DNA from: Epithemia pelagica
Lineage: Eukaryota; Protista; Bacillariophyta
Length of the DNA: 64,000 nucleotides
Assembly (NCBI GenBank): GCA_946965045.2
Contig: OX337228.1
Span: 5,084,001 to 5,148,000, forward strand
Direction: 5' to 3'
Shown here one piece after another: positions 10,011 through 42,827 of this stretch. The notes below the pieces were generated by a model. It worked only from the letters and a program-made list of their open reading frames with translations. It was not told the origin of the DNA and made no database searches. Both the position numbers and the translations under genes were made by a program. Each line of letters begins with the position of its first letter. The stretch's first letter is position 1.

Positions 10011-10187
10011 AAGTTCTAGATACAAACTGGTGAACTCAGTTGATGAAAGAGTATCTCGTATGTCAAATAGCCTTTACTACCATGGACATGAGATTACATG
10101 GCATGAGTACTTAAGCAATCGTCTGATGGATGGTCTTATCAATACTAGCTTGTCCATTATATGGTTGATCCCTCAAACAAAAACAGA

Positions 10188-11145
10188 TTATCTGATTACT
10201 TTTGCCTCAGTTCGCAGCTTGGCGATCAAATCGTCAACGCTTTCCACCATGATACCATCTTTTCTAGGAGGAGGCTCCATAACTTCCAGAACCGTGTTTT
10301 GAGGTGCGAGGTCCACATCCATCTCCGTTGCGTCAATAGTGTCTACTGGCTTCTTTTTGGCCTTCATGATATTGGGTAGAGTAGCATAGCGGGGTTCATT
10401 GAGACGCAAGTCACAAGTCACAACAGCAGGCAAGGCCGCTTCAATAGTTTCAGACCCTGTATCAGTCTCCCTTTCCACCACCATCATATCGCCGTCATTG
10501 ATTTCCAATTTTGACACAAATGTGATCTGTGGCCAACCCATCAATCCCGCCAGAAGTGGACCCGTTTGACCTATCATTTCCGAAATGCACCTCACAATGA
10601 GCACCATATTTCACAGTGAAACAGAGACCGCGGCAGATACGCATGAGTCATTTCCATAAATAATTCGCATGATACGTACCACAATCGGAGTCAATACCTT
10701 GCTTTCCCAGCAACACCAAACTTGACTCCTCTTTCTCTGCAACTTTTTTCAAGAGCTGTGCAATCGCGAAAGGTTGCAAATCCATGTAATCGGTTCGCAA
10801 ATCACCAGTTTGGATATGAATACCTCGATCACAACCCATGGCCAACGCCGTTCGAATGGTTTCGGTGCATTGTTTTGGACCAATGCTCACAGCAACCACT
10901 TCCGACGCCTTTTTTGCTTCCTTCAGCCGAACTGCTTCTTCCACGGCAATCTGTGTTGTCCAGAAAAAGACACGATTTAGGGAACGAAAATCCAATTTCT
11001 CGACGCTATTAACCCGTTGCAGAAATCGTACCTCACAAAACGGATTCATGGAATGCTTGACATTGGCGAGATCAATGGTTCCCTTATTGACGCGAACCTT
11101 CACTGCATAGTCCACCACGCGTTTGATACCAACAAGAACTTTCAT
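10188..11145 (-). CDS. ETFB: Electron transfer flavoprotein beta subunit, 3 exons
   Basis: [26 protein letters not shown]|[22 protein letters not shown]|[25 protein letters not shown]. Introns 11031-10951 and 10679-10571. Confidence 0.95.
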
Positions 11146-11544
11146 CTTACGGGGGATCTTGGAGATGTACTTGAGGACTTTGGACGATCAATAGAGCGAG
11201 TCAAACACAATGCAGAAACCTTCTTCGGCCTTGTTCAGATTTCAGATGTCAAATGTCAATCTTGTGTTGGTCAATGTCAATGTCATCGACGCCCGAAGTT
11301 TTCTTTGGCTTTTCCAAAAAAAAGGATCTTTGATGTCTCCAGTCGCGACGAATTCTACGACACGACGCACAGACGGGTAACTACCTCCTCGCGATATAGA
11401 GGTAGTAGGTAGGAGGTACCTACTCCTACTCCTCTAGCTAGCTAGAGGTACTATCCAGGCAAAAGTTTGGGCAGGACAAACGAGAAGGGGAAACAAAATG
11501 CAACCTTTGAAATTGCTGGTTCTTAATATCAAAGGACCTAGTTC

Positions 11545-12084
11545 TCAACGATGATGGTATTTCGTGTTGGTGGCCCATCCCATTTTCTTGCTTCGCTTCA
11601 CCAATGTCTTATAATACGATTCAAAACTTCTCGGAGGCTTCGATGCATGCTTCTGATGATAGTATTCCTCAATTCGGTCATCCATTCCCTCCATTGCCTT
11701 TTCAATTTTCTGGGCCCTTTCCTCTCTGGTACGCTGGCTTTTCGTACCCTTGTTGGGGCGAATTCGGATTCGTCCTTGTCCTGCCGGTTTCAACATGGCC
11801 AATTGGATATCCCACGAACGCTCCCATCCTCTCAAAGTTTCCTTATTAAAGGTACCATACGATCCTTCTCGAATTGCAATTTTACGTAACTCCCTTGCCC
11901 TTCTTCGTGAGACGGGCGGTGACCTCCACACTCGTAGGCCGTCCTCCCTTTCAATCAGTAGTGGTCGCAAGGCTCTCATACCCATTTTCGACAGAAGAAT
12001 TCGTGCTTGTTTGTGGATAGTTCGAGCCGAACTTGTTGCTTGAGTCGCGAGCAACGACAATGGTAACATCCTATTCCAAAGCAT
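11545..12084 (-). CDS. Probable mitochondrial ribosomal protein, mL59-like
   Basis: Basic protein with a presequence-like N-terminus (MLWNRMLPLSLLATQ). WRSPPVSRRRARELRK and KGTKSQRTREERAQKIEKAMEGMDDRIEEY resemble mL59/MRP-L25 motifs as recalled. Start chosen at the first plausible ATG. Confidence 0.6.
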   Translation of the reverse strand: MLWNRMLPLSLLATQATSSARTIHKQARILLSKMGMRALRPLLIEREDGLRVWRSPPVSRRRARELRKIAIREGSYGTFNKETLRGWERSWDIQLAMLKPAGQGRIRIRPNKGTKSQRTREERAQKIEKAMEGMDDRIEEYYHQKHASKPPRSFESYYKTLVKRSKKMGWATNTKYHHR

Positions 12085-12425
12085 GGTGGCTTCGTGTCCT
12101 CGATCTCGACTCTCGACCTCACAATCACAACGGAGTTCTTTGATGGCGCGAGAAATCTTTTCTGTCGCGCCTGATGACAGCGTGTCTGTGTCCCCAGTCC
12201 CCACCCAATCACCAATCCCCAAGCCATAATAGTGATGACAAATAGAAGGGGGCGGAATATTCTTCAGGTCATTATGTTGGGGGGGGGACACTCCCACTAT
12301 TCCTGCTATGTAACATGCCTATTTCTGCAGTATTACGAGTACTCCTAGGCAATAGGCACGTGCAGTTTTTCATCGTTATGCTTATCTCTAGAAGTCCCAT
12401 ATGCAAAGCAGATCGTAGCAGCTGT

Positions 12426-13817
12426 CTATTTTAATCTTTCAGAGAGAACGAAGCCAAGGACGAGCCCAGTTCCAAGAGCGAGGGTAAGGTTCGTCCAATC
12501 AGAGACCGATCCGTCTTTGTACATCGTCCAATCCCCCACAGAAGAAAAGGATCGAAGTAATGATCGTCCTTTTTCTACCACGGGGCTTCCCAGAACAGAC
12601 TGGTTTCTACTTCGAAGGCTTTTCTCTCTTTTCTTCAATGATACCGCTGGCGCCGCGTGGCTCTGTACATCTTCTGCCCACTTGACGGCCTCTTCTGGGG
12701 TTTGGACGAAATGGACAATTTCTGCTGGATTTAGTTTCAGCAGCTGGTCCTTTGAAGCACGGAGAAGCATTTGGCGAAAAGGGTCATAGAAACCATTCAC
12801 GTTCACACATACGATGGGAAGTTTGGAAAGACCGATATTTCTAGCGCATGCCATTTCCCAGAGTTCATCCCATGTTCCAGGTCCTCCCGGCATGACAATC
12901 AAAGCATCGGCACCATTCACCAGGAGCCGCTTTCTTTCTTGTAGGTCCTTTCCTCCAGCAACAAGCATTTCTCTGATTGGTCCTGCATCCTTTGAACCAT
13001 TCAAGGATGGATGAGGCCCTCCATGTGACTGAGGAATCTCCGAACCTGCAGTTTGAGCTTCCATCGTTTCACTAGCCTTGGATTGAAAAACCGAATGTGC
13101 TCCTCCATCTCGAAGATTCTTTACACCCCATTCTTTTTCCAAGTCAGCTCCGTCGACAAGCCACATTTTATGAATGACACCCACGATATGCCCGTTGCCT
13201 GCTGCACACCCTTCATTGAGGGCTCCCATACAGCCAAAGGTTCCGGCACCATTGACGCAAGTGTGCCCACGAACTCCGAGCAAATAGCCCACCTCCGCGG
13301 CTGGCCTAAGATATAGCTCAGGTGTCTTGCTGCTGCTTGATCCATAACAGCAAATCCGAAGAGGCCTGGATGCTTTCTCCTTCGCAAAAGGTAGAGAAGG
13401 TACAGAAGAGTTAATAAGCATCTTGCACGAATCATTGACATTCTCTGTACCTGTCAAAGGACGCGAGTTTTTCTCTTTGGTCGCAGAGAGAGATTTGTCT
13501 GGCATTAATGCCACGTTGTTTGGCTTATCGAACTGTGCCAAAAACTTGGAAACACTTGCCCTTTCAGGAGTCTCAATGACAGCCTGTCCTCCCCTTTCTG
13601 CCTTCTCTTCCGCTCGTTTCTGCTGTTCAAGACCAGGAGATCTCGCCGCCAAGCTGTCCCCAGGCATAATAGCAATATTATCCGGTTTCTCGAACTGAGA
13701 CAAGAATTTTGAAACACTAGCCCGTTCAGTTGTGTCGACAGCTTCGTTCATGGTGTCATTCGCTTCTCCGCTTGTGTTTTCTGTTGTGACTGCGATTCCT
13801 TTCGTCAAGGTGGACAT
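12426..13817 (-). CDS. LOG/lysine-decarboxylase-like family nucleotide phosphoribohydrolase with a C-terminal hydrophobic anchor
   Basis: ICCYGSS, NGAGTFGCMGA, QERKRLL and ADALIVMPGGPGTWDELWE (the PGGxGTxE motif). C-terminal LTLALGTGLVLGFVL. Confidence 0.88.
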   Translation of the reverse strand: MSTLTKGIAVTTENTSGEANDTMNEAVDTTERASVSKFLSQFEKPDNIAIMPGDSLAARSPGLEQQKRAEEKAERGGQAVIETPERASVSKFLAQFDKPNNVALMPDKSLSATKEKNSRPLTGTENVNDSCKMLINSSVPSLPFAKEKASRPLRICCYGSSSSKTPELYLRPAAEVGYLLGVRGHTCVNGAGTFGCMGALNEGCAAGNGHIVGVIHKMWLVDGADLEKEWGVKNLRDGGAHSVFQSKASETMEAQTAGSEIPQSHGGPHPSLNGSKDAGPIREMLVAGGKDLQERKRLLVNGADALIVMPGGPGTWDELWEMACARNIGLSKLPIVCVNVNGFYDPFRQMLLRASKDQLLKLNPAEIVHFVQTPEEAVKWAEDVQSHAAPAVSLKKREKSLRSRNQSVLGSPVVEKGRSLLRSFSSVGDWTMYKDGSVSDWTNLTLALGTGLVLGFVLSERLK

Positions 13818-14043
13818 CTTTTATTATGAGAGTTTAGTTGAGATGTGGAAGACCTCTTGCCTCGTGCATGACATTCAAGTGCCAGAGAGCGAGAACCGGG
13901 GGGAAACATCAAGGAATCCGCATCAGTCGCTGATTGGTCATAATTTCCGGCAGAAAGGCTATGGAGAAGCCTATGATAGGATTCCCGCTTCGCAACTCGA
14001 GAACAATGACAACGAATGCTACAACGAAAAAGATTCGCACACC

Positions 14044-14924
14044 ATGACCAAACCTACAAAGAAGAATCAACCCACCAAAGTCACGTCAACGATGGGCTCA
14101 ACGACAAAGCCCGTTTCGACATCGGATAGCAAAGATCAGAATGCTCCTCAAAGCTCTCCTTCAGTGGATCGAGCTGGGCCGCTGTCAACAGAACGGGTTT
14201 TTTTGTTGGGAGCGTCGTTGTTGTTGGTAGGAACTCTTGGTTTCTATTATCTGCCTGGAATGATTGTTTTGGACGAGGAGAGTAAAAATGACCATTTGAG
14301 TCGAAGTCGGTTAGTGGATGCCTTCTATTGTGCTGCGATTACCTTAACGACGTAAGATATTGGATTCACTGAGTCGTCGCTGGTACAATAATGGGAATGA
14401 ACGTCTCATTCTGTTCTCCCTACCATAACAGCGTTGGATTTTGTGACATTTGTCCTGGTGAAACAAACTTGGCTGGGAAAGTGTTTCTGATCCTGTTTAG
14501 TTTGTGCGGTCTTGGTATCTTTTGCGGTCCAATCATGGATCTAGCGTCATCCTGGAGACATCAGATTCCTGGTGGATTGCCCACTCTGGCAAGCTTTACG
14601 ATTGGCATAGGGGTGATGGTGTTCACCACGTTTGAAGGTTTGGCTCAAACGGATGCAATTTATGCCAGTGTGATAACGGGTATGTCAAAATTTGCATTTG
14701 TTGGTACTATATCATTGAGACTAACAAGAAGCTCTTGACTTTGCAATCATGACTACGATGTAGGAACAACAATTGGGTATGGTGACCTCGCTCCATCCAG
14801 CAACCTTGGTAAAGTTGCTGTTGCGTTGTACGCGATAGCTTCCGTCAATGTCATGGCAATCCTATTGGAACCTGCACGTCGTTCCCTGGAGCTTCTATGT
14901 CGTTCAAAAGCCAAAATAGATTAA
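14044..14924 (+). CDS. Two-pore-domain (4TM/2P) potassium channel-like protein, 3 exons
   Basis: Introns 14352-14431 and 14680-14763. The spliced product has TM-pore-TM twice: DAFYCAAITLTT|VGFCD and DAIYASVITG|TTIGYGDLAP. Confidence 0.85.
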
Positions 14925-15132
14925 ATCGAACTCGCTCTAGAAGCATGACATGAATCCCCATATGGTATGCAAAATAAAGAAACTAAACTTGCTTGCAAGT
15001 TATTGGGAATGTAGCGGAGATACAGCAGCATGACCCACTTGTAGATCTACATTGTTTGTGACTTAGTCATGAGAGCACCAATTTTCTGGATGGAACTGTC
15101 ATTCGGAATTCGTTGAGAATATGGAGTCGAAC

Positions 15133-15821
15133 TTAGGTGTCCTTTTTCTCGTCGACGGCCATTTGATCCACAATATCTCCGGCGGCTTCGGACAATCCAG
15201 CTGCCGCATTTTTGGCGTCGTTCAAGGCAGCATCGATGCGAGATTCACTTTTTTTCAGTAGATCTTTGAGAAAGCTATCATAAAGGAATTTGGCACCCTT
15301 AGTTTGGGGAAGCATCGCCCACAACAAAAAAGCAAGCTTGAAGGCGTAGAAGAAGGGGATCCAGTAAAGCAAAAGATCAACGAAACTTTCAAGAATTGAA
15401 AAGAAGGCAAAAATAACCCAGTACACCAGCCACTGTACATCATCTCCTTTGGTTTTCGTTTCAACGGCCTGGAAACTCTTAAAGGCCGGATATACAAATC
15501 CAACAAGAGACGACAAAGACGCAATACCAATTCCAAACACCATTACCAAGGCGAACAACAATCCAGCACCAGCAACAACAATTTCCTTTGGTACTTTGAT
15601 GCTTTCCTGCAAATCGAGAAAGGATGCAGAGCATTAAGAAAGCAAGAAACGAGTCATGGCGGATGAGTCGTTGTACGACCACGCTGGGACCAAAGATACA
15701 AAAAGGATTCGATTCGATTCGATGCATGATTGTGATTCTATCTCACCTCTACTTGCTGCAGTTGAGGGTACTTGTCGAGCTTCTTACGAAGCGGAGCGAG
15801 TTTCTCTTGAATAGCTTCCAT
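15133..15821 (-). CDS. TB2/DP1/HVA22 (REEP/Yop1) family ER-shaping protein, 2 exons
   Basis: MEAIQEKL...LQQVE, GT-AG intron ending at 15607, then VGFVYPAFKSFQAVE...DDVQWLVYWVIFAFF...WIPFFYAFKLAFLLW...GAKFLY. Confidence 0.88.
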
Positions 15822-16328
15822 GGTTGATTTGAGGTTTGTTTCGCAATTCGACGATATGGCTTTGCGAACGAAGGATCTGGTCTCTCGCTTCTTTGTTTGT
15901 TCTCGTCTTCGTAGATCCTTAGCAATGAGAAAGAGACACGCCTGCGCCTGGGCTTTGGCGCTACCCGCGCGAAATGCTGGTTTCGAAATGGTCAGAGCTT
16001 TGCACGCGCGAACACAGCGAAGAAAATAGTCCACGTCACTCTCTGTTATCAAGCTGAAGATGCGCGCGTGGAATCAATCGCATTTACATTCACCACTCTC
16101 AACTCTCAATTGCGTTCGAGCAATGACACGAGTAGACGAGTCGGCCTTTTGACAAGGCTCTTTCACGCTCATTTTTCTCTTCTCTCTCATTTTCATTGCT
16201 CCCCGACATCTGATCATACAATACGAGTCCTGCTGGCAAACGTTGCATTCTGCTTTGTTGCTTCTATTCGAGCCATTTCGTTTTCGGATTAAAAGACGTC
16301 TAGTGTCGTCATTCCAATTTTCACAACC

Positions 16329-30381: not shown

Positions 30382-31467
30382 TTATTCGAAAGGGAGCTTC
30401 GGCGCCTTGGTATTCGTTCTAATGTCATTCGAAGGCTTTGAGAAAAAGCCATGAGGATTCTTTACATTGGCTCGGAATTCCACCCAACAATCCGCACCAG
30501 CTGCCTGCGAATCAATCATTTTACGGCCACCATGGAGAACTCGGCCAGATTGTAGCTCTGGAAGTGATGCAGCCATGAGCGATTCTTGTGCCTCGGCGAA
30601 CATGCTTGAGTAGCTTGTACGATCACAAAGCCGAACATCGATTCCGAGGAAATCTGGATGCCGAATAACCAGCTGTCCAGCTTTAGCCCCAGTGTGACCT
30701 ATCTCCCTTTGTTGAAATGATGCATCATCGCTCAGACGCTCTGAACAACTCTGGACCGAATCGCAGTGAAATACAAATGAAGGAGGAGACAATCTCAAGT
30801 CCTCTGCAGCGGTTGGGAGCGGTCGTATACATAGACCACTGGAGTACTGGTATAGGCCTGCAACAGGCCTTTTCAGCTGAGATATCCTCAGTTCCTTCAT
30901 AAGAGCCATGCCTGGAAGACTGGAAGAGTCGGTGGGCAACGCAATTTCCTTCAGTGAATTGGTTGAAAAGCGGTGTACCGAATCGGGACGAGCAGTGCTT
31001 TCATCAAATCCCAATAGTGTCGATTTCCTCCGTCCAAGCAAGTCGGATGCACGAAGGGCATCCCCGAGCGTTGAACGTAACATTATTGGGAAATACCTCC
31101 AAAGGGACTGAATGTTTTCGGCTAGAGTGGTTTTACTCTCGTCAAGTGTGTTGCTCTCGATGATGCCAAGAACCTGCTGATGTTGAGAGGAGGGCAGCGG
31201 CGATAGACTCGTAGTCGGATGGACAGAAATCCAGTGTATCAACGCTCCCGTGTTGGGACATTCGAGAGCAATAGAATCCCATTTTGGTGCAAATGGACTG
31301 GTTTGTTCAAAAACTCTTTTCCATATGGTAGTGTCGTGTTCGTTGTTGTTATGTGTTTCTTCTTTAAAGCGCCATCCACAGATCACTGCAAGCCGCTCCC
31401 GACATTGTCTTGATGCTTGCGGAGAGGGAGAAAGAAGATGAACGACGGGAACCAAGCTTTTTTTCAT
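30382..31467 (-). CDS. Hypothetical protein
   Basis: 361-aa uninterrupted ORF with an ATG and globular-looking composition. No family recognised. Confidence 0.7.
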   Translation of the reverse strand: MKKSLVPVVHLLSPSPQASRQCRERLAVICGWRFKEETHNNNEHDTTIWKRVFEQTSPFAPKWDSIALECPNTGALIHWISVHPTTSLSPLPSSQHQQVLGIIESNTLDESKTTLAENIQSLWRYFPIMLRSTLGDALRASDLLGRRKSTLLGFDESTARPDSVHRFSTNSLKEIALPTDSSSLPGMALMKELRISQLKRPVAGLYQYSSGLCIRPLPTAAEDLRLSPPSFVFHCDSVQSCSERLSDDASFQQREIGHTGAKAGQLVIRHPDFLGIDVRLCDRTSYSSMFAEAQESLMAASLPELQSGRVLHGGRKMIDSQAAGADCWVEFRANVKNPHGFFSKPSNDIRTNTKAPKLPFE

Positions 31468-31553
31468 GGGGACAAAGCTAGTTCAGCGGTAGAACGGAAG
31501 TCTTTCGTCATTTTTCCAATCGAAAAGCGACATCGACACATTCTACATTCTAT

Positions 31554-31574
31554 TAGGAGTACTCGCTACTCCTA
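31554..31574. promoter_or_regulatory. Inverted pair of the recurrent TAGGAGTA/TACTCCTA motif
   Basis: TAGGAGTA-ctcgc-TACTCCTA is a perfect 8-bp inverted repeat, 87 bp upstream of the 31467 ATG and 20 bp from the transposon insertion site. Confidence 0.45.
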
Positions 31575-31595
31575 CAATACTTCTCCTTTAGGGTA

Positions 31596-31629
31596 CAAGC
31601 TGAGTTCAGACAGAATGTTCCTGACGTAG
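31596..31629 (+). repeat. Left terminal inverted repeat (34 bp)
   Basis: caagctgagttcagacagaatgttcctgacgtag, preceded by TA. Confidence 0.93.
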
Positions 31630-32223
31630 CGCTCCAGTAGGAAATCTACGTAATCCGCGCGAGCCATCCCCTTAATATAGCCCTTCTATTTATGCCTCTA
31701 CCGTTCTACCAAAAATTGACCATGGTGAACGGTCCTTTTGACCGATCTCTTGCCAAATAGGAGACGGCTCCATGATCCCATGCTCTGAACCTCTTCTCCA
31801 TTCATGGGTTGAGCATGGAGAACGATGTCGGCGCTGCATTCGTTTTGTAGGTGTCGTTTTATCTAGTTGAAGGTGGTCGCCGCGCGATTTACTACGGCGA
31901 CTCACGGCAAAACTTGGTGCAACCAATGCACCTCTATTGTAGAATCGAATGATAGAAGATAGAACAAAGACTATGAACACTTGTAGCGTTGTTCACGTCA
32001 AAAATTGATATTCTTCTCGTTAGATATATGGAACTTAGACTAGAAGTTGCGTCGTTCACAACAAAGATTGATGTTCTTTTCTTTGTTGTGACTCACACAG
32101 CCGTACCTGAACGCAATGTATTGTACGGTAAACGTAACACAACTATAGAATTAGATCGTATTCATAGAGAATGAAGATCCTACTCAAATGATAATCATAA
32201 AACGCTGCTACATTGTTCACTAT

Positions 32224-32796
32224 CTAGGCTTGTTGATGATTAAAGAAGAGATTTTGAAGCGGGTGCTTGAGCATCATCGCACCAAGCGAAATGTTGAAGC
32301 GATCCATATCCTTGCTGCCCATGTAGATTGTAACGACCTGGGGTTCCATGCAGGCTTTAGGGTTGATGGAGCAGCGTGTGTAGAGGCGGATGCGTCCCAT
32401 GGGAGGTCCGTTCTTGCTCGTCTTTCCAGAGACCTGGTCCAGGTGCGACAGAGCAATGAACCCAACTGGAACAACCAACGCTGGTTCCTCATGCTCGCTT
32501 GTTGCATCCCGGTCAAAGACTGCAATCCGTAGGTAGTCGGTCGCAAGCTCCCGCTGCACAAGCAGATGGCCACGGTCGACGATGTTGTGGCCAGTGTCCT
32601 TGTTTCTCGACATGGGCCCGATGAGCGCGCAAACATCGCTGGCATAAAAGCACGACTTGAACGGGAGACCAGCACCACCCTCACGGCCATCCTCTTCGTT
32701 GAACTCGAACTTCGTCCTCATGTTGGTCATCTTGTTTCTTCTTCCTTGCCTCTTCCTGTCGTCTCTGTTTGATTGTTCCATTGCACGGCGGGTCAT
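32224..32796 (-). CDS. Transposon cargo ORF A, hypothetical (190 aa)
   Basis: ATG-started ORF divergent from cargo ORF B. Basic N-terminus followed by a globular-looking region. No family recognised. Confidence 0.5.
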   Translation of the reverse strand: MTRRAMEQSNRDDRKRQGRRNKMTNMRTKFEFNEEDGREGGAGLPFKSCFYASDVCALIGPMSRNKDTGHNIVDRGHLLVQRELATDYLRIAVFDRDATSEHEEPALVVPVGFIALSHLDQVSGKTSKNGPPMGRIRLYTRCSINPKACMEPQVVTIYMGSKDMDRFNISLGAMMLKHPLQNLFFNHQQA

Positions 32797-32967
32797 TCGG
32801 AAGTTGCTTCATGCTGCAAGTTGATTTTGTGGCGCGCGCCGATATTGTTCACGAATGAGCGCGGGGGGATTCCCTAGATGACACAAGAACGGAGAGCGGG
32901 CAACAATCAAACAAACAAACACAACAATCAAACGAACGAATCCCTATTGTGTTCTCACTTTCCAACG

Positions 32968-33874
32968 ATGCGCCAGACGCGTAGTGCTACCAAACGAGCT
33001 GAGTCTGCGAAGAAGGAGCAGGAGGACTCCGCCGCAGCTCCCTCCACAACCGCATTTCCCTCCGACAAGGGAAACAAGGGAAACAAGGCAAACAAGAAAA
33101 TGAAGACAAAGACGGCCGTGGACAACAAAACGTCGAAGAAGAAGAAGACGACGACGACGAAGTGTCCCGCTTCGACAAAGAAGCATGTGACCTTCAACCT
33201 TGAGGGTCCTTCGTCGTGGCACGAGCGCGCAAAACAGTGGCAACTCACCATTGGGGATGAAGATGGTATCCCAGTGTTCTTCGTCAGCAACAAGGACGTC
33301 GAATGCGCTAACCTGTCGGATATCGCGGCAGAGCTCCTTGCGATCGAGGCTGTCGGCAAAGAAGGTAAGTTTGATTGTTCATTGTTGGTTTTGAGTCTCC
33401 CTTTCTCACGACGCGCCCTCTGCTGCCACAGACACCAAACCCAACAGCAAGCCCGACAACAAGCCCGACAGCAAGCCCGAGAAGGAGATCAAGAAGGAGG
33501 ACGACGTCGAGAACAAGACTCCAGAGTCTTATGTGACCCCGAAGAAAGTAACTTCTTCCCCGAAGGTGGCGTCTCGAGCTTTCGCACTGACCCCCTCCCA
33601 GAAGCATGCTTTCCAGCGTCGGATTGCTGAGGAACAGGTGAAGGAAAGTGGAGCGACAGACCCTCGCCAGACTTTGAATGAGTCGCTGGCATTGGGAGAA
33701 AACATCCCGTCGTCTCCTCCTTTGTTCTTTAGCAATCCTTCCCGTGCATACCGGACATCCATTGATTCGTATGCCGATGATGGATTTCTCGAGACCCAAG
33801 AAGACTTCATCGGTACGCAGCAAAACGGGCTTTTTGGTCCCGATTACTTGGATCATGAGGACGAGGCGTACTAG
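32968..33874 (+). CDS. Transposon cargo ORF B, hypothetical with Lys-rich N-terminus and acidic C-terminus, 2 exons
   Basis: MRQTRSATKR...AVGKE, then a GTAAGT...CAG intron at 33365-33431 joins in frame to DTKPNSKPDNKPDSKPE...DYLDHEDEAY*. Confidence 0.65.
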
Positions 33875-33924
33875 ATATCTACTGATGGACGTTTTAGGTA
33901 TCCTTAATCACTAAATATGAATCG

Positions 33925-34145
33925 ATTTGTCATCATGGTACTTGTAGTGCTTCTACAGTCGTTCTTGTTGTGATTATCATTATTGTCGTCGTCCAAGTCC
34001 TCGTCATTGTCGTGGCTATCATTGTCGTCGTTGTATTGTAGTCGTCCTTGTTGTAGCTATCATCGCTCATCCCGTTTGTCCTCTTCATCATCGTTATGGT
34101 CGTGATTGTCATGGTCATCATCATCGTCATCGTCGTCATCCAGCT
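33925..34145 (-). repeat. Degenerate GAY/AAY trinucleotide low-complexity tract (Asp/Asn-rich coding remnant)
   Basis: The minus strand reads [20 protein letters not shown]..., interrupted by stops and a frame change. Confidence 0.5.
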
Positions 34146-34400
34146 TCCCAGTGTCGGCAGTTGGGTCCCGGTTTGCGGGCGCGTCTCGTATGGATGTACG
34201 AGGGAGTTCGTGATTGGTCCCAGACGAGCTATGATTCTTATCTCATATTTTGCGTTTTCGACACTTCATGGAAACAAACACGACAATGTACTAAAGTATA
34301 ATATGAAGGAATAAACTAATAAATCTTAATGTCATACTGCAACTCAACGTACCATGGTATTCTTTTTCAACAATAACACACTTTCACCACGAGGAAAGAT

Positions 34401-37250
34401 CTAAGTTTGATCGGCTTCTTTGCTCGCGATCTTCTTACCAGGTTTATAATTCGCGGCCACAAGCACCTTACGAGGATTGTCACTTAGGACGCAAACACGC
34501 TTGTCCCCGACCCAAAGCTTAACCCCAACGAGCCCACTTCGGCGAACACCAGGGATGTCTTTGTCATGGAAGTAGTAGTCGGAAAGCCTGCTTTCTCCAG
34601 AAGGAAGGTTGTAGGTGTTCTTTGGCATGGGATCGTGAACGGTCCCATCTTTTCCTTGGTACACGTAGAAATGTGCACGTGGATTCCCCATCTCCCCAGT
34701 CTTAAAGCCACCAGCATGGACAGTATCTCCTCGAACGAGGAGAAACGTGCCATATGGGATATGTACCACTTTACCCAGCTCGTTCATATAATCCTTGTGC
34801 TTCTCACCGCGGAAACTCCACAATTCAACGGACATACCCTCCTCCGCCAGGGGCATGAAAACAATAAAAGGCATGCGTTCCCGGAGTGGCAGATCTGCAT
34901 TCGCTCTCCGAGTCTTTTTGATTGGTTGCTTCCCGGAGGGCGTTTTGGGACCTTCGGACATGTTCCCTGTTACGCTCTGGAACAAGAAGTCGATGTGAGG
35001 TTCTTGAACTTTTGCCTCTGTGGTCTTCATGAACGAAAGGTGAATGTTGATTTGGTCCGCAAATGAATCATCTTTTGCGTAGTTCATCCCATAGAGAGCT
35101 GAGGCAAGCAGCTGCTTGAAATTGGCCGTGACCTTTGCAGCATGTTCGGGGTTAACGTGGCCGAAGTACCGAATGTTGGACACCATTCCCTCATGTTCCA
35201 TCATTGCCATCAACAAATTTGGTGTGTAGTCTTGAACAGATTTGAAAAATTTGCCCTTTCCTTTCTGGTCCAAGCCTGTGCTGTGCCACGCATTCTCCAA
35301 CATTTCGAGGAGATCTGGCGGAGTTGTCAAAAAATATCCTCGATACATTTTGTTTTCAATATCGTACAGCCATTTGAAATACTTCGAGCGCAATTCTCTA
35401 TGTAACAACTTCATTTTCTCGAAACGCTCATTCTCCTTCGCTTTCGCATCGATCGCTTCCATCTCCTCAAAAATACTATCCGTGTCATCTTCTGCCATTA
35501 CCACTGGTACGAACATTCCAGTACTAGGGCTGGGATTGGCTTGAGTGGCGGGTTGAGCTTGTGCTGCAGGTAGGACGGGACTGCTGGGAAGGAGCACGGG
35601 TTGAGCTTGTGCTGCAGGTGGGATGGGATTGCTCGGAAGGAGGTGGGGTGAGCCTTCGACCGGCTGGGTCGTGCGTTGTTGTTGCTGCTGATGATGGAGC
35701 GATGAAGGTAGAGTCCCCCCGTAACCTCCATAGTTGGGTTGATTGTAGGACGGAGGATGTCCATGGTACTGCGGCGGAGGATGACTCGTCGGAGGATGAG
35801 GATAATGCGGCGGAGGATAAGGATAATGCGGCGGAGGATGATGATTGTACTGCGGCGGAGGGTAATTGTACTGCGGCGGAGGATAATTGTACTGCGGCGG
35901 AGGATGGTGATAATATTGCGGAGGATAATGCGGCGGCAGCTGAGGGGGCGAATTGTAGTGCTCAGAAACGTATTGCGGAGGAGGCGGAGAAGGAGGACGA
36001 GCAACAGTAGCAACTGGACGGAAAACAGTAGAAGGAGAAGTTAAGACAGGCTTCTTTGTTTTTTTCCCGTCGTCTTCATTTTCATCACTGGGTCGACCGC
36101 GTTTCTTTCCCTCGTCTTCGTCGTCGTCACCTTTCGTCGACGGTCGGATAACCTGTTCGGAGGACGTCGGCGATTCGTCCGTAAGGTTATAAAACAAAGA
36201 CAGCTCGTCGCCCGGCTCAATATTTTTGATTGCCTTAACTAGAAGATTCGGCATGATTCTCACGTTGTAACCGTCGTCCGATTCATCCGGTGGATTGTCT
36301 GTACCGTACAGATGGTGTTGGTGGTCGTTGATTAAGTGCAGCCCCATGCCGAAGTGATCGTCGTTGTCTGCTTGAAGCCTTCGATTGTCACGTCCGAACT
36401 GAATCGCGTACTCGTTGGGTACAACTGTCCGAGACGTGACGTCGTTTCCCGTGTACGCACCAATCACTTCACCATCTTTGATTGTCCGAACTGCAAAAAC
36501 GCCAAACCCGGCGCCTGGGAGTTTTGACTCCTTCACCTCAAACAGAAGCATTTTTCCAAGGTAGATCTTGACTACCGGATTGTTCGCAAATGTGTAACCG
36601 ACATGCTTGCCGATCGGGAAGGTATGTTTTCTGTTCTTCTTGACAGGGAGACCCATTCCACTCGAAAGTGGCACAATCTTCCCCTTTAGCAAGCCAGAAC
36701 CGGGCTTCCGAATTGGAGCTTCTTGGACCGAAAAAGTGGCCGAAATCTTCCGTGAGACATACTCTCCCATAGCACAGGCAAGTACAGCACTGTCTTTGAT
36801 CTTGGAGAGCGTCTTGAGGCCTTCGGTGAAAGTCCTGATTGGATCCCGTCCAGAACGAGAAGGGAGTTTCTCCACTTCCTCGATGCCTTTCTTGTAGTCC
36901 TCTGTGCGCGTATCGATGAGGAGCTGCCGCATTTGAGTTTCCGAATACTGTTTGCTGTGGTCCTTCTCTGGATGGCCACGCCGAACATCTGCAAGCTTTT
37001 TATCCTTCACTTCGGCAAAGTCTTGATCCGAAAGAAACCGATGGTGCTTTGTTGTTGTCGCTTCGTCTGTTGCTGCTGCTTCGGGTGCTGCGGCTGCTGC
37101 TGCTTCGGGCGCCGCTGCTGCTTTGGCTGACTGCTCTTCCGCTGCATCTATTGCAAGTATAAGAGCGTCAAGATTTCCTTTGTCACTCATGCTGTCTCGT
37201 TTTTGAGCGCCTGCTTTTGAATACTGTTTCTTAGGGCTTGGTTTCCCCAT
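34401..37250 (-). CDS. Transposon cargo: SET domain plus Pro/Tyr-rich linker plus 2OG-Fe(II) dioxygenase-like domain (949 aa)
   Basis: SET part: VKESKLPGAGFGVFAVRTIKDGEVIGAYTG...HLINDH...VKAIKNIEPGDELSLFYN. Dioxygenase part: QEPHIDF (HxD)...PFIVFMPL...VHIPYGTFLLVRGDTVHAGG (distal His)...NPRAHFY (candidate 2OG-binding Arg). Confidence 0.88.
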   Translation of the reverse strand: MGKPSPKKQYSKAGAQKRDSMSDKGNLDALILAIDAAEEQSAKAAAAPEAAAAAAPEAAATDEATTTKHHRFLSDQDFAEVKDKKLADVRRGHPEKDHSKQYSETQMRQLLIDTRTEDYKKGIEEVEKLPSRSGRDPIRTFTEGLKTLSKIKDSAVLACAMGEYVSRKISATFSVQEAPIRKPGSGLLKGKIVPLSSGMGLPVKKNRKHTFPIGKHVGYTFANNPVVKIYLGKMLLFEVKESKLPGAGFGVFAVRTIKDGEVIGAYTGNDVTSRTVVPNEYAIQFGRDNRRLQADNDDHFGMGLHLINDHQHHLYGTDNPPDESDDGYNVRIMPNLLVKAIKNIEPGDELSLFYNLTDESPTSSEQVIRPSTKGDDDEDEGKKRGRPSDENEDDGKKTKKPVLTSPSTVFRPVATVARPPSPPPPQYVSEHYNSPPQLPPHYPPQYYHHPPPQYNYPPPQYNYPPPQYNHHPPPHYPYPPPHYPHPPTSHPPPQYHGHPPSYNQPNYGGYGGTLPSSLHHQQQQQRTTQPVEGSPHLLPSNPIPPAAQAQPVLLPSSPVLPAAQAQPATQANPSPSTGMFVPVVMAEDDTDSIFEEMEAIDAKAKENERFEKMKLLHRELRSKYFKWLYDIENKMYRGYFLTTPPDLLEMLENAWHSTGLDQKGKGKFFKSVQDYTPNLLMAMMEHEGMVSNIRYFGHVNPEHAAKVTANFKQLLASALYGMNYAKDDSFADQINIHLSFMKTTEAKVQEPHIDFLFQSVTGNMSEGPKTPSGKQPIKKTRRANADLPLRERMPFIVFMPLAEEGMSVELWSFRGEKHKDYMNELGKVVHIPYGTFLLVRGDTVHAGGFKTGEMGNPRAHFYVYQGKDGTVHDPMPKNTYNLPSGESRLSDYYFHDKDIPGVRRSGLVGVKLWVGDKRVCVLSDNPRKVLVAANYKPGKKIASKEADQT
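35745..35960 (-). repeat. Tandem 18-21-bp repeats encoding PPPQYNY/PPPHYPH units
   Basis: The plus strand has repeated tactgcggcggagg/aatgcggcggagg units, in frame within the SET-dioxygenase ORF. Confidence 0.85.
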
Positions 37251-37662
37251 GGTCGAAACGCAAAAACTCGAAACACGAAACACAAGAAACACGAAACGCA
37301 GCATTCTCCTCAGCCCTCAGCCCACATTCCAAAAAAAAAATCTTGAGCTCACATACTAAAAAACGGTGAAGTTTTGGTATGTGGGCTGAGTTACTTAAGG
37401 ATTTGCGTGCCAGTTTTGCGATGCGTGCGCGTTTTCGGAGAGGGAGGCGTGTTTCGCGCGAGGTCTGCTCCGAAAATCGTCCATTTTCTCGCTCTCTCAC
37501 ATTTTCGAGGTACTTACAAACTGATAATCCAACACGCAACACGAGCACGCAACACGGAAGTGATCATTGATACCAATAACTGACAAGAAATACATTCAAT
37601 AAAATGGATTGCTGTTATAAATAGTTAAGTTACATGCATTTTGATGATAAATGGAGATTAGA

Positions 37663-40600
37663 TCAGGTTTCTACTGCACCAGATCCTTGCGTTTCTCTCC
37701 AGAGACGTGAGATGAAGCCATGATCTTGGTCGAAGGCGGATCGGTGACACTTGATTGCTTTTGACATCTTTTCAATTTCGGCATACGAGAGGCCCGCAGC
37801 TGCATAGTCGCTGTTGTTGGAATTTTGATCGTATAACAAGTACGCGAGCATATAGCGACGTGCCTTTGCTGACATTTTCCGCATGATTTCGGGTGTTGTT
37901 TTCTTCAGGCTCGCTGTCAAACATCGTAAAAAGGCAGCTTTGTCTTTCTTCTCATTCAGTGAGAAAGCACGAAAGACTTTTTTTGAGTAACCCCAGCCAT
38001 ACTCGATCCCCTCACCGGCCATTTCACAGTGATACTTGGTCGATACGAGAATCTCGATCCTGCAACGATGTCGTTCAGACAAGTCTTCCGCCAGCTTCTC
38101 CATTGCAGATTTTTCGTTCTTGAAATCGGAGCATTCGCTCATCAGATGAACCATAGAGTACTTTTTGTAGTCCGCCTGATAGGCTTCTTTCACAGTCTTC
38201 TTATCCGCTTCCAACCATGCATCTCTGGTTGTCTTGACGTACTTGATCATGTTGTTAGGGTCTATCCACCCCCGCTCCCATAACACTTGAAAGAGCCCTT
38301 TTGCATTATTCATCCAGCCTTCCTCGATCACATCATCTTCAATCACCGTTGCAATGTTGGAGCGTTTACAAAGGTCCTGTAGTTCACCAGCATTTTTCGA
38401 TTGAAATGAACGTTGCATTCCAGGTCCCATGACCCGGACAAGTTTTGCCATGAGCTCCTTCTTTGTGAGGTTGCGCTTTTTCTTTCTACCAGTTCGGTGT
38501 GTATTCTTCGATGCGACACGCTGCGCGTCATTGAGACGATGGCCTTTTTTAGCAACTGGACCACGATCGTTCTCCTGATAGACGAGGTGTTGTACGTCAC
38601 CAACTCGTAGTTTGTCGTCATGGTTGTACGGGCCAAGGCAAGCTTGATCAATAATTTGTGTGTCCCGCATGCTGGGAACAGCTCCTCCCCAGTCGTTATT
38701 CATGTTCAGAGCATTTAACCCATCGGATTGTTGTTTTCCATGACCACTGCTTTGGTCGAACAAAAAGACAAAGTCATGGGCGGGGAACATGACCACGAGG
38801 CAATCGACAATATCCTCCAACTGCAAGGCCATGTATTCATAATTCCAATATCCCTCTTTATCTGCTCCGTATTCAAAAAAGCGAGTGAACGGTTGGGCAT
38901 TGGTAATTGGAGTCTTGGCAGTGTGACCATTGAGGTTCACTGCAGCCTCGGTAGAGACGTATTTGTTGTGTGTCGCATGTAGACGGAGTTCATTAATCCG
39001 AAATAGACTCGCAGCAAGCAACGGGTTTCCGTTCATAAGGAAGCCCCATGATCGGCTTACAAAAGCGCTGATCATCATCCCATGTCCATCATCCTTTGGC
39101 AGCATTTTAGTTGCGCCATCTTTAGTGTACCATGCCTTAGACGAGAAGGAAAACTGCTTGTAGATCGATTCGTCCTGGCCGATGAGGATGACAGGTTTGC
39201 GGTCGGAGGGAAACCTGTGTGACAAGTTTCCATTGTGAATTGTGTTTTCTGGTTTGATGTACCGTTCAAATTCGCTTGGGAAGGCATCAACATGGTACTC
39301 CCGCATCTGCTTGCCTGTTGTTACATCAGTGTACTCAAATACAAAGCTGTTTGGCAAGAGCTTCTCCTTGCCCGCATTCCCTTCGTTTTCAAGTTTGATT
39401 GCATCCTCGGTAGGGAGCTGCACCCACCGATACGACAGCTCTTCCCACTTAAAGTACTTCTTGACAAAAGCAGCTCTGTGGGCAACATTCTCAGCATTTT
39501 CGTGTCGATCAGTGAAGTATGTTTTCGTGTGTTCCTTGAACACGAGCCCTGCAGCAGCAATACATCGCCACGCTGTGCTTTGCGAAATGGTGGAAAGCTT
39601 CATCGATGCCAAGAAGGCCTCGTACGATACTGGCGTTGCATTCGTATCCATGCACTCTTGTACGATCATGGTATGCATATCCGGAAGCAATGTTGTCCTC
39701 AGGTACATTAGAGCAGACTCTGTTGTAAGAGTGCTCAGGTTTTCCTTTGCCCAGCATTCAAACTTTACCTTTGCTTCAGGTATGTGAACGAATAAGACGG
39801 GCGATGGCTCTTTCCCAATATGAACGTGGTAGTTGGGATGAGGGAAACTGTCGTTTTCCCGAAAGTACCTGTGAAAACGAGCAATGGTCTTGGGATGTTT
39901 TTTTACTTTTTCACCATAAATCTGTTCCATTTTGCTTATGGCTTCGCTTATGCAGTTCAGCCATGTACGACCGTGTGGCATATCAAGCAACGCTATCTTA
40001 TAAGAAAGTTGTAAATACGTTGCCTTGAGCAGTACCCTCTGTTGCTGTTCCTGGTTGGGGGGGAAGATGTCTCCCTTGTTAACCACATTCGGAAGTGCCT
40101 CCACGTTGGAAATGGCCCTTTCAAGGGTTTCTATCCATCGCTCAAGATTTCGTTTTGACGATCCTGGAGAATCGCATTTGCCGGCAAAGAGCCTACGGTT
40201 CCTTGGCTCATCAAAACAGGCGCTTTCCATTTGTTGCGATAGACCTTGGATCATCTCACTCTCGAAAACTGAAAAACCAATCGGCAAACTCTGTGGATGG
40301 TCATGGCCGATTTCGTCTGTGGCCAATTCAGGATGTTGGATTGCTCCAACAAGCACCTGATTTGTGTTGTCGTGAGGTGGTGACGTTTGCATTTCGGTAG
40401 GGCTGTCTCCAATTTGTGGCGGTTGACCATGTTGCTGCGTTGCAGTGCTCTTCATTGCTGGTGGTGTTGTAGTGTTTCTTGCTTGCTTGGATACAGTTGC
40501 CGTGCCTTCATGTACCCCTGGTGAGTCTTCGTTCCTTCGCTTCGTTGGCTTCTCTCGTCCCGACCGCCGAATCACATTCTCGGCTGCAGCCTCCAGCCAT

Positions 40601-40929
40601 TCTTGGTGATCGTTCAACATCACTGGCAGTTTTGTTGTGTCGGAGCTTATATACAAGAATGTGTATCTTTGTTTATTGATTGTGATTTTGTGGCGGTACC
40701 AGCCAAACTTGTTTGGTTCCGACACCTCATTTTCGAAAATGGGTTTAAGGACAATGTCTCTAGAGAAAAGAGAATTCAATCTGATTGTCGACAGTCCTGG
40801 CAACCAAGTTCTCAGGTATCCTACAATCTCGGTGTCTTGGATCCACTTGTTGCAGAATCCAAACGAGGATCGGGTGCATCGCGTCTTAAAGACGTCAAGA
40901 ATATCTTTCCCAGAAAAATTTCGTTCCAT
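37663..40929 (-). CDS. DDE transposase, IS630-Tc1-mariner-like, long-insertion type (1088 aa, uninterrupted)
   Basis: ISQSTAWRCI...GLVFK (HTH end); YFTDRHE; ILIGQDES (D1); GHGMMISAFV; EGYW; FLFDQSSGH (D2); KGLFQVLWERG; STKYHCEMAGEGIEYGWGYSK (E motif, equivalent to PxxSPDLNPIExxW). Confidence 0.93.
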   Translation of the reverse strand: MERNFSGKDILDVFKTRCTRSSFGFCNKWIQDTEIVGYLRTWLPGLSTIRLNSLFSRDIVLKPIFENEVSEPNKFGWYRHKITINKQRYTFLYISSDTTKLPVMLNDHQEWLEAAAENVIRRSGREKPTKRRNEDSPGVHEGTATVSKQARNTTTPPAMKSTATQQHGQPPQIGDSPTEMQTSPPHDNTNQVLVGAIQHPELATDEIGHDHPQSLPIGFSVFESEMIQGLSQQMESACFDEPRNRRLFAGKCDSPGSSKRNLERWIETLERAISNVEALPNVVNKGDIFPPNQEQQQRVLLKATYLQLSYKIALLDMPHGRTWLNCISEAISKMEQIYGEKVKKHPKTIARFHRYFRENDSFPHPNYHVHIGKEPSPVLFVHIPEAKVKFECWAKENLSTLTTESALMYLRTTLLPDMHTMIVQECMDTNATPVSYEAFLASMKLSTISQSTAWRCIAAAGLVFKEHTKTYFTDRHENAENVAHRAAFVKKYFKWEELSYRWVQLPTEDAIKLENEGNAGKEKLLPNSFVFEYTDVTTGKQMREYHVDAFPSEFERYIKPENTIHNGNLSHRFPSDRKPVILIGQDESIYKQFSFSSKAWYTKDGATKMLPKDDGHGMMISAFVSRSWGFLMNGNPLLAASLFRINELRLHATHNKYVSTEAAVNLNGHTAKTPITNAQPFTRFFEYGADKEGYWNYEYMALQLEDIVDCLVVMFPAHDFVFLFDQSSGHGKQQSDGLNALNMNNDWGGAVPSMRDTQIIDQACLGPYNHDDKLRVGDVQHLVYQENDRGPVAKKGHRLNDAQRVASKNTHRTGRKKKRNLTKKELMAKLVRVMGPGMQRSFQSKNAGELQDLCKRSNIATVIEDDVIEEGWMNNAKGLFQVLWERGWIDPNNMIKYVKTTRDAWLEADKKTVKEAYQADYKKYSMVHLMSECSDFKNEKSAMEKLAEDLSERHRCRIEILVSTKYHCEMAGEGIEYGWGYSKKVFRAFSLNEKKDKAAFLRCLTASLKKTTPEIMRKMSAKARRYMLAYLLYDQNSNNSDYAAAGLSYAEIEKMSKAIKCHRSAFDQDHGFISRLWRETQGSGAVET

Positions 40930-41285
40930 CCTGTTGTAGACCGTGTTGCGTGGGATGAGTTGGATGATCGAATTATTGAGGATGATGCCAACCGTTTGAG
41001 ATGTTGCCCCATTTGGGGTGGTTCAAGTAAACCCTAAAGCATCCGGATGCAGCTCGGCAACATCTCGAACGGTTGGGATGGCCCTCCACCATGGTCGTTA
41101 GACAACAACCGTTTTTTCATCATTTTCGACGGAATTCTAGCGTTCGGAAGCTGTCACACATCACGGTACGAAACAAAAAATTTATTATTCAGACACTGGG
41201 TTGTCACGAGTCGGACACTTTCATTCACTAGTCAGGCCAAACGCTATTGAGGATTATATTTTATGGTACTAAATCTACGAGGGGT

Positions 41286-41319
41286 CTACGTCAGGAACAT
41301 ACTCCCTGAACTCAGCTTG
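41286..41319 (-). repeat. Right terminal inverted repeat (34 bp)
   Basis: ctacgtcaggaacatactccctgaactcagcttg, followed by TA. Confidence 0.93.
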
Positions 41320-41831
41320 TACAGGTATAGGTAGCCCGACGCCCGACCCACAATAAATGCGACCAGATTACGATGGATAAGGATAAGGATAAGGTAATCC
41401 TCGAATTATCGTACCGCTAAAATGACGTTATTGGTAAGAAACGGACGGTGGGTATTTGGCATTGTGTGTATGCAATGTCTATGTGCATCGTGTATCGTGC
41501 ATATGGGGCGTACGAGGTACGAGTACACGAGTAGTCGTAGTTCCTCTATGCATTTTTCTTTCTTTTTCTGCCGGGTTTCGATTTTGGATCGGATAAAATC
41601 CATTGATGTTAGCCTTTTGGAAAGAAAAAGGAAAAAATGAGTTCAGAAAAGAAGTCGTGGTAGAATGAATCACGAACGGACACACCCCTTGCCCTTCGCT
41701 TTCTATCGTTCAGAGTGTACGCGAGGAACAAGGTGTCCGGAACATCTGTTTTCGCGGCCACGTTCCATCCAACAAAGGACACAAATCAAACGAAAACAGA
41801 ATTTCACGACATCTATACTATCGCTATCGCA

Positions 41832-42827
41832 ATGGAGCTCATTCCATCCTCATCATCAGATGACATGGCGTCTATGAAGCGCTCTTTATTATCCGATCCA
41901 GACGAAGCGGCCTTGGGCGGTATTGTCTGCGTAGATGACCCACAGCTCGTGGTAAACCCAAATGACTTCCGAGACGTACATGAGAACGACGTAGAAGCTG
42001 ACAATTCGAGACATCAGTCAAGCCCAGATGAATACTTCGGTGATGTAGAGGGTGACGAAAATGATATTCCTTTTGCCGTGGCATGCATAGAACCACTTCT
42101 ACCAAATACTGGAGAAGAAAGCAGAGAGGAAACTCGTGAATGTGAGGAAGGCATTGCTGCCCAACCAGTGGTAGACTTTCGCCATAGTCAGTCATCAATC
42201 ATGAGACCTGAATTCCTCTTGGCCACTGCTATTAAACCAAGCCTAGACAGTCCAATTGGATTGACATTCAAGAAGAAGAATGGAGGAGTTTACCTATCTC
42301 GTGTGAGTAAGGATGGTCTCTTTCACAAGTCCGGATTTCAATGTGGTGATAGGGTTGTTGCGGTGAACAATGTTAGCTGCATCGAAGCACCTCTACGTAT
42401 GATAAGGGACATGATTGAGAAGTCTGAGAGTGATATTTCTATATGTGTTCGAAATAAGTACGGTGACCCACATTCGGTGCTCACAAGCGTCCAGAAACCA
42501 AGCAGAGACTCCAAACTTGGGATATGCTTCCAGGTGCGCCGCGGAGCCCTTACAGTATCCAGAGTTCGACCAAACAGCCTGTTCGCCAACAGTTTGTTGA
42601 TGCCCGATCACCGATGTATGATGATTAACGGCCAAGCCTGTGAAAGCATGGGTTCGCATGAAGCCGCCGCCCTTACAGCGGACGCTGAGCGCGTCACGAT
42701 TGTTAGCCGAGCACGCGGTGATCTGGCCATCGTCCTCGCCGTTGGAGAAGTTCGACGTTGGTCCGCCGTCGCTCTTGGTGCTGGTGTTGCGGCTGCAGCC
42801 CTCAGCGCATTCGGGTCGGTGAGTTAG
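41832..42827 (+). CDS. Tandem PDZ-domain protein with a C-terminal hydrophobic tail
   Basis: KPSLDSPIGLTF...VSKDGLF...GDRVVAVN and KPSRDSKLGICF...VRPNSLF...MING. Ends VALGAGVAAAALSAFG. Confidence 0.8.
   Translation: MELIPSSSSDDMASMKRSLLSDPDEAALGGIVCVDDPQLVVNPNDFRDVHENDVEADNSRHQSSPDEYFGDVEGDENDIPFAVACIEPLLPNTGEESREETRECEEGIAAQPVVDFRHSQSSIMRPEFLLATAIKPSLDSPIGLTFKKKNGGVYLSRVSKDGLFHKSGFQCGDRVVAVNNVSCIEAPLRMIRDMIEKSESDISICVRNKYGDPHSVLTSVQKPSRDSKLGICFQVRRGALTVSRVRPNSLFANSLLMPDHRCMMINGQACESMGSHEAAALTADAERVTIVSRARGDLAIVLAVGEVRRWSAVALGAGVAAAALSAFGSVS

Follow-up and report, generated by a model that had tools for sequence, protein, structure and literature searches.

A recently moved mariner/Tc1-like transposon of the diatom Epithemia pelagica with a putative SET–oxygenase accessory gene

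A 64,000-nt stretch of the Epithemia pelagica genome (contig OX337228.1; the whole stretch is here called the window) contains 9.7 kb of DNA framed by short inverted repeats and holding, besides a long transposase gene, further genes including one for a SET-domain protein. The locus raises two questions: whether these parts form a single mobile element, and whether the additional genes are a kept part of it or cargo acquired by chance. The original prediction, made from the letters of the window, described an intact and recent Tc1/mariner-like transposon with a chromatin-modifier cargo. The best overall explanation of what follows is an intact, recently moved transposon of the IS630/Tc1/mariner (ITm) class with a long-kept set of accessory genes, and we consider this explanation very likely.

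The element is 9,728 bp long (window positions 31594–41321, including the TA pair; Table 1). Its 34-bp terminal inverted repeats (TIRs) were found exactly where they had been predicted, are identical at 31 of 34 positions and can be extended to an inverted repeat of 48 nt at 83% identity. When any base is allowed at its three variable positions, the TIR pattern has only two sites in the window, which are the two element ends, and it matched in none of 100 shuffles, giving a chance expectation of 0. The TA dinucleotides foreseen outside both repeats are also present, here and in all eight copies described below. The terminal motif of the left TIR, CAAGCTG, is common to two diverged lineages (L007 and L009) whose elements, of 9.8 kb and 7.0 kb respectively, likewise possess inverted repeats with TA on both flanks; the window repeat begins CAAGCTGAG, close to the starts CTAGCTGG or CAAGCTGG in these lineages. 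Target duplications of four base pairs (GTAC or TATA) were considered and rejected because the bases beyond the TA vary from copy to copy.

The exact 1088-residue transposase occurs on five contigs of the European Nucleotide Archive (ENA) assembly ERZ21939226, and the exact 967-residue frame of the SET-domain protein occurs on two further contigs. Seven extra copies (L002–L006, L017 and L018) share exactly these 9,728 bp with the window, at 99.94–100% identity, and in every one of them the similarity stops at the identical base on both sides, the junctions are bounded by TA and the flanking DNA is different. Among six copies, the window included, variation amounts to six single bases and one 3-bp indel, and the transposase is intact and identical in at least six. 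Contigs assembled from three read sets of this organism have a depth of ~140–150 in the flanks and of ~2,400–4,000 inside the element, a contrast that fits some twenty copies, summed contig depth being a rough guide only.

An empty site was also found. One 8,538-nt contig of run X2 joins window positions 31000–31597 directly to 41319–42800, the two stretches overlapping by the five letters GTACA, and the same junction recurs in a 2,435-nt contig of run X3 and in loose ends in runs X1 and X2. This empty allele reads ...tttagggTAcaggtatagg..., with a single TA and no footprint, which is the sequence that had been predicted for it; the filled junction of the locus was seen in the window only. The empty-site contigs differ from the window nearby by two single-base changes (A>G at 31552 and T>G at 42336) and two indels (5 bp deleted at 41407 and 6 bp inserted after 41479), so at least one empty allele belongs to a different haplotype. 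An exact-protein look-up of the left flanking open reading frame (ORF), aimed at the empty haplotig, returned no record. The insertion is polymorphic, and the element has recently moved as a unit into TA sites. The expectation of further copies that carry the cargo as one unit, and of recent mobility and intactness, is therefore borne out by eight near-identical copies with precise ends, TA flanks, unrelated surroundings and an empty allele, and the element is an intact and probably autonomous cut-and-paste DNA transposon.

Two side observations concern its distribution. In runs X4–X13 (marine sediment, biofilm and marine metagenomes) 5–21% of the element's words are present, and X4 holds pieces of the transposase gene at ≥99% identity and a depth of 2–4; these matches place the organism, or the element, in benthic marine samples. 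No RNA run contained the element. A related copy at L001 (positions 9615–14746) is 97% identical over 5.1 kb, begins to diverge just past the SET domain, is followed downstream by unrelated ORFs and a Copia-type RVT_2 gene, and is probably a truncated or interrupted copy.

To which class does the transposase belong? Its predicted uninterrupted frame of 1088 codons is present, and a Pfam search with this protein and 29 homologs matched no family (DDE_3, DDE_1, Transposase_1 and HTH_Tnp_Tc3 included); among PDB sequences, too, neither the protein by itself nor a 29-sequence profile found a match. An AlphaFold model built from the alignment has a mean predicted local distance difference test (pLDDT) score of 78, and its core superposes on solved mariner/Tc1 catalytic domains over 192–203 residues at 2.8–3.6 Å. 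The best structural match is the Metnase transposase domain (score 14.1; root-mean-square deviation [rmsd] 2.8 Å over 192 of 201 residues), followed by the Mos1 catalytic domain (13.7), full-length Mos1 (13.6) and the Sleeping Beauty catalytic domain (12.4); retroviral integrases, the next class, score 9.0 or less and Tn5 scores 8.1. Upstream of the catalytic domain, where ITm transposases have a bipartite (paired-like) helix-turn-helix DNA-binding region, the window transposase has a helical region (residues 221–460), and residues 6–345 of full-length Mos1 align to model residues 296–1054 at an rmsd of 12.8 Å. Matching AlphaFold DB clusters (E 1e-20 to 1e-10) are mostly annotated 'Tc1-like transposase DDE domain-containing protein', and PF13358 (DDE_3) is carried only by language-model and fold neighbours of the transposase.

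Three acidic residues, D586 (GQDES), D725 (FLFDQSSGH) and E976 (HCEMAGEGIEYGW), are fully conserved in all aligned sequences that extend over them. In the model D586 lies on the first strand, D725 ends a later strand and E976 starts a helix, a predicted placement like that of RNase H-like transposases. Their spacing is D-138-D-250-E in the window and D(115–144)D(191–268)E across the family, and the motif around the catalytic glutamate is HCE[ML]AGEGIE. The modelled architecture comprises an RNase H-like core, a winged-helix-like extension at the N-terminus and an insertion of ~240 residues between the second aspartate and the glutamate. When 1.84 billion representative proteins were searched with a profile, 14,691 relatives were returned at E ≤ 0.001, of which 1,943 reach E ≤ 1e-30, and by these counts the family is large; named relatives include Fragilaria crotonensis proteins, and viral contigs searched with the transposase yielded no relative. 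One relative, 31% identical over residues 239–1073, lies on a contig (L019, CAVQRK010000019.1) of a metagenome bin labelled Actinomycetota and is more likely a eukaryotic contig in that bin than a bacterial gene.

Short TIRs, a duplicated TA target, a DDE triad on an RNase H-like core, a hydrophobic strand that runs into the second aspartate and an IE-x-x-W motif at the catalytic helix are common to this element and to ITm transposons such as Mos1, Hsmar1/Metnase and Sleeping Beauty. The window transposase differs in being three times longer, and the element in having 9.7 kb and two to four genes, against one gene and a typical 1.3–2.5 kb (PMC8533490). ITm families are classified by the spacer from the second aspartate to the glutamate, which is classically 34–41 residues; the longest in that compilation is that of Sailor (DD82E), at 78–111 residues (PMC8533490). 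Sailor resembles the present family in its enlarged spacer, in its occurrence in stramenopiles, in having some members >4 kb and in a motif, HCELNPIEL, that shares the HCE start and IE end. It differs in its 4-bp TATA duplication, against a 2-bp TA here (to judge from the bases beyond the TA among the copies and from the empty site), in transposases of at most 676 residues, in a spacer well below the 191–268 of our family and in having no reported accessory genes, against a conserved set here; we regard relatedness to Sailor as a lead only. The ~250-residue spacer is outside every named family found. We file the transposase as mariner/Tc1-like by fold, triad and TA target and as belonging to no named family, so that the predicted Tc1/mariner assignment stands on these three features and does not extend to any sequence profile or named-family spacer.

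The gene that follows the transposase on the same strand encodes a fusion protein. We favour its start at 37250, which agrees with the 949-residue product of the gene callers and with the MGK start of the homologs in two diverged lineages (L008 and L009). Its SET domain scores 26.7 bits in Pfam (gathering cut-off 22.4), and a profile of the transposon-borne SET domains retrieves the EZH2 and PRDM SET domains from the PDB (E 7e-5). The GxG motif (AGFGVFA) and the C-terminal Tyr372 are invariant across homologs, and YG, YH or YD takes the place of the NH dipeptide, a replacement shared with PR-type SET domains; methyltransferase activity is plausible.

The ~300-residue C-terminal domain, which follows a low-complexity linker, was found in this genome's transposons only, with no relatives in Joint Genome Institute (JGI) metagenome contigs or in viral contigs. 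Within it H770, D772, H863 and R876 are invariant in four sequences, down to 41–45% identity, and form the HxD...H iron triad and cosubstrate-binding arginine pattern of 2-oxoglutarate (2OG)-Fe(II) oxygenases, with a spacing similar to that of human phytanoyl-CoA hydroxylase. Language-model neighbours of the domain fall in PhyH, HalD or '2OG-Fe(II) oxygenase' clusters, and an Atlas shape search led to PhyH, 2OG-FeII_Oxy and JmjC clusters. The single enzyme match of a PDB profile search was FtmOx1 (E about 1), in an alignment whose VHAGG...PR block falls on the distal histidine and the arginine, and a structure predicted from the four-sequence alignment (pLDDT 39) gave FtmOx1 or OkaE as its first 22 Foldseek matches (E 8e-3). 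These signals are individually non-significant and not fully independent, and we treat the structure matches as weak but consistent hints; that the domain has an oxygenase fold, of whichever sub-family, we consider likely. It had no Pfam hit of any kind, and TET/JBP proteins were absent from its top fold matches. Two ORFs downstream of the L001 copy (636 and 501 residues) were tried as diverged versions of the domain and proved unrelated. Of the predicted 'SET-dioxygenase', then, the SET half is confirmed by a Pfam match above the cut-off and the dioxygenase half is probable, with an invariant signature and weak fold and sequence matches that are all to 2OG oxygenases.

Of the element's proteins, ORF190 is the most strongly conserved, with 40–69% identity across lineages and a mean column identity of 62%; its homologs are 60% (L007), 48% (L008), 43% (L009) and 45% (L015) identical to it. 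Compared with L007, its ratio of nonsynonymous to synonymous divergence (dN/dS) is 0.28 at a dS of 0.95. Searches of Pfam and the PDB found nothing, and neither JGI metagenome contigs nor viral contigs contained a relative. On the opposite strand, ORF113 is 57% identical to its L007 counterpart (dN/dS 0.30) and has weak matches in L009 and L015, and the overlapping ORF250, at a dN/dS of 0.80, is not convincingly coding. The claim that at least three genes accompany the transposase is thus solid for the SET fusion and ORF190 and partly supported for the plus-strand ORFs.

Table 1. Features of the element, in window coordinates
Feature	Position	Strand	Remark
Left TA target-site duplication	31594..31595	.	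TA in 8/8 copies, with unrelated DNA outside; single TA in the empty allele
Left terminal inverted repeat, 34 bp	31596..31629	+	Weaker similarity on to 31640
ORF190, conserved accessory protein	32224..32796	-	Fold unmatched; homologs in L007, L008, L009 and L015
Opposite-strand ORFs, uncertain third gene	32878..33874	+	Possibly spliced; ORF250 32878–33630, ORF113 33533–33874
SET–oxygenase fusion gene	34401..37250	-	949 residues from Met19; open frame to 37304 (967 residues)
Probable 2OG-Fe(II) oxygenase-like domain	34590..35387	-	H770, D772, H863, R876
Acidic, then Pro/Gln/Tyr-rich low-complexity linker	35475..36107	-	Tandem repeats
SET domain	36186..36509	-	Residues 266–373 of the 967-residue frame; Pfam SET
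Hairpin between transposase stop and SET start	37316..37390	.	19-nt stem; motif pair in L007 and all close copies
Transposase, 1088 residues	37663..40929	-	Catalytic triad D586/D725/E976 (DD250E)
Hairpin between right TIR and transposase ATG	40978..41086	.	31-nt arms; L007 hairpin at equivalent position
Right terminal inverted repeat, 34 bp	41286..41319	-	
Right TA target-site duplication	41320..41321	.	TA in all copies

Assembly ERZ21939226 also contains four diverged lineages whose transposases are 53% (L007), 44% (L008), 38% (L009) and 38% (L015) identical to that of the window, and every one of the four encodes a SET protein or its remnant together with an ORF190 homolog. In L007, L009 and L015 the SET gene comes after the transposase in the same orientation, with ORF190 close to the far end; L008 has ORF190 placed before the SET gene. 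The L009 lineage is itself multi-copy, with 25 transposase sequences in a 90% cluster and the ORF190 homolog on 14 contigs. From this comparison the SET–oxygenase and ORF190 genes emerge as a long-kept accessory set rather than accidental passengers. The idea of a recent element with 'passenger' cargo accordingly divides: the element is recent, and the cargo, kept where transposases are only 38–53% identical, is not a recent passenger.

The SET–oxygenase gene has a history of its own. Between the window and L007, DNA identity is 84–93% over this gene and 62–80% everywhere else, and synonymous divergence is 0.13–0.23 in it against 0.93–0.95 in ORF190 and ORF113. Since its divergence is far below that of the backbone, the gene was exchanged between the window and L007 lineages well after the backbones had separated. 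A further locus, L016, encodes a 921-residue protein of the same architecture, with 46% identity in the N-terminal and SET part and 41% in the oxygenase-like part; this gene lies within inverted repeats of 2–3 kb and adjoins fragments of a PF13843 piggyBac-type transposase (E 2e-9). The SET–oxygenase gene thus behaves as a module exchanged between transposon backbones. The L016 element itself (positions 1890–16222, ~14 kb) has terminal inverted repeats that consist partly of tandem units of ~190 bp; at its ends, CTAGTGCCGCGCC..., neither a TTAA nor any other duplication was recognisable.

Several observations weigh against this overall picture. The empty allele may be a never-filled site or the result of excision with template repair, either being possible. 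Neither Pfam nor PDB sequence profiles recognise the transposase, whose class membership comes from predicted fold, motifs and TA target. The SET domain does not have the canonical NH motif, which makes methyltransferase activity uncertain, and the oxygenase assignment draws on a low-confidence model and sub-threshold matches. The dN/dS of the SET fusion is as high as 0.66 relative to L007, although L007 is a decayed copy. Finally, distant transposase relatives (30–35% identity) do not have any accessory genes; these relatives include a Fragilaria locus and a single-gene element of 3,570 bp, of which several metagenomes contain 100% identical copies. The accessory set thus marks a sub-lineage, and the transposase family at large does not depend on it. 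The 3,570-bp element was seen at L012 (758–4327) and L013 (422–3991) in differing flanks, with a 32% identical transposase (P0017), ends (A)GTATGGCAGGTTTC, and G-TA on one side and TA-CT on the other in both copies.

How might such an element work? The transposase would bind the 34-bp TIRs, excise the element by mariner-style cut-and-paste and integrate it at a TA, which would be duplicated. Most probably the SET–oxygenase protein would, to the element's benefit, modify histones or a different protein of chromatin or repair, either at the element or in its vicinity, and ORF190 could assist transposition as a cofactor or act together with the fusion protein. The element may in this way carry its own chromatin-modifying tool; that the role is one of anti-silencing or self-marking seems to us to fall a little short of an even chance. 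A more far-reaching proposal is tentative and, taken as a whole, rather unlikely: that the fusion is a writer-plus-eraser of chromatin marks which reprograms the histone methylation of the element (for anti-silencing or self-marking) and is traded between mariner-type and piggyBac-type superfamilies in diatoms, while the transposase family, which has thousands of members and a spacer of ~250 residues, constitutes an undescribed IS630/Tc1/mariner branch. The two conserved hairpins may be regulatory. The one between the transposase and SET genes, which has a perfect 20-nt stem in its L007 counterpart, could be a terminator or regulatory element, and the one beside the right TIR, together with a 30-nt subterminal stretch near the left end (31718–31747) that is 70% complementary to part of it, may provide candidate subterminal binding sites.

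The rival that survives best holds that the accessory proteins serve transposition or repair and not anti-silencing: the SET domain might, for example, methylate histones at the excision break or the transposase itself, and ORF190 might be a DNA-binding cofactor comparable to the Myb-like second protein of Harbinger elements. A role in end joining has been proposed for the SET domain of SETMAR/Metnase, and our transposase core finds its best structural match in the transposase domain of Metnase, a primate protein in which that domain is fused to a SET domain, so that both cases link the same two activities; moreover, the strong conservation of ORF190 is what would be expected of a core cofactor, and all close copies, as well as three of the four diverged lineages, have its gene next to a TIR. 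SETMAR, however, arose when a host gene captured a transposase and not the reverse, nothing here indicates a substrate for the accessory proteins, and these partners are dispensable to the enzyme family, to judge from its cargo-free members. We consider this reading possible, though doubtful.

Less probable still, and in our judgement improbable, is that the accessory genes are neutral passengers that began as fragments of host genes, were captured a single time (as in Pack-MULE or transduplication) and were amplified with the element without any function for it. The dN/dS of the SET fusion (0.66 against L007 and 0.67 against L001) could be read in this way, as could the variant SET catalytic motif, the apparently non-coding ORF250 and the failure to find the cargo proteins outside this genome in JGI metagenomes and viral contigs. 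The comparison copies L001 and L007 are decayed, however, which inflates the ratio, and ORF190 retains a ratio less than half as high at the dS given above. Neutral passengers would also not be expected to keep open SET and ORF190 frames among the diverged transposases, in the same order in three of four lineages, to have invariant catalytic-type residues in both fusion domains, or to be maintained as the same fusion in an unrelated transposon (L016). As for copies made by segmental duplication or assembly artefact with coincidental TIRs, the derivation of all extra copies from one assembly might invite the thought, but it is refuted by homology that ends at the identical base at both ends of 8/8 copies in unrelated flanks, by TA at every junction, by a precise empty site, by ~20-fold depth in independent short-read contigs and by the zero chance expectation of the TIR pattern.

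The long-kept accessory set of this mariner-type element has partial parallels. As cited in PMC12730594, Kojima and Jurka (2014, Repbase Reports) described SET histone methyltransferase genes in HarbingerS and MuDR transposons of Phytophthora, which are likewise stramenopile DNA transposons with their own SET gene inside the TIRs; those elements have a PIF/Harbinger or Mutator transposase, whereas ours has a mariner/Tc1 fold, and the citing paper makes no mention of a SET–oxygenase-like fusion such as the one here. Fungal DNA transposons (KDZ, Plavaka and others) encode TET/JBP dioxygenases (PMC12730594) and so resemble the present case in combining a cut-and-paste transposon with a 2OG-Fe(II) oxygenase-type gene of suspected epigenetic role in several unrelated transposon lineages. 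The domain described here differs in having no TET/JBP match, its weak matches being to prolyl hydroxylase, PhyH/FtmOx1 and AlkB-type enzymes, and in its fusion to a SET domain, which suggests that the substrate is a protein and not DNA. SETMAR (Metnase) also links a SET domain to a mariner-fold transposase, but it is a single domesticated primate host protein that no longer transposes, in contrast to the separate genes of an active multi-copy element. The literature covered, which was incomplete and did not extend to Repbase Reports, contained no report of SET-carrying transposons in diatoms, of a mariner-type element with such cargo, of a transposon-borne SET–2OG oxygenase fusion or of an ITm family with a ~250-residue spacer.

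Tc1/mariner is the textbook minimal transposon, one gene between two short repeats. Here, in a branch with outsized transposases, one sub-lineage has retained at least two additional genes despite deep divergence and is still mobile. That two transposon superfamilies have exchanged the same cargo gene suggests that selection acts on the cargo itself. With near-identical copies and a polymorphic insertion, the element offers active material for transposition assays and possibly a genetic tool. Diatom epigenetics is poorly known, and if the SET–oxygenase protein acts on chromatin, this transposon would be a natural system for studying how a mobile element manipulates host silencing in diatoms.

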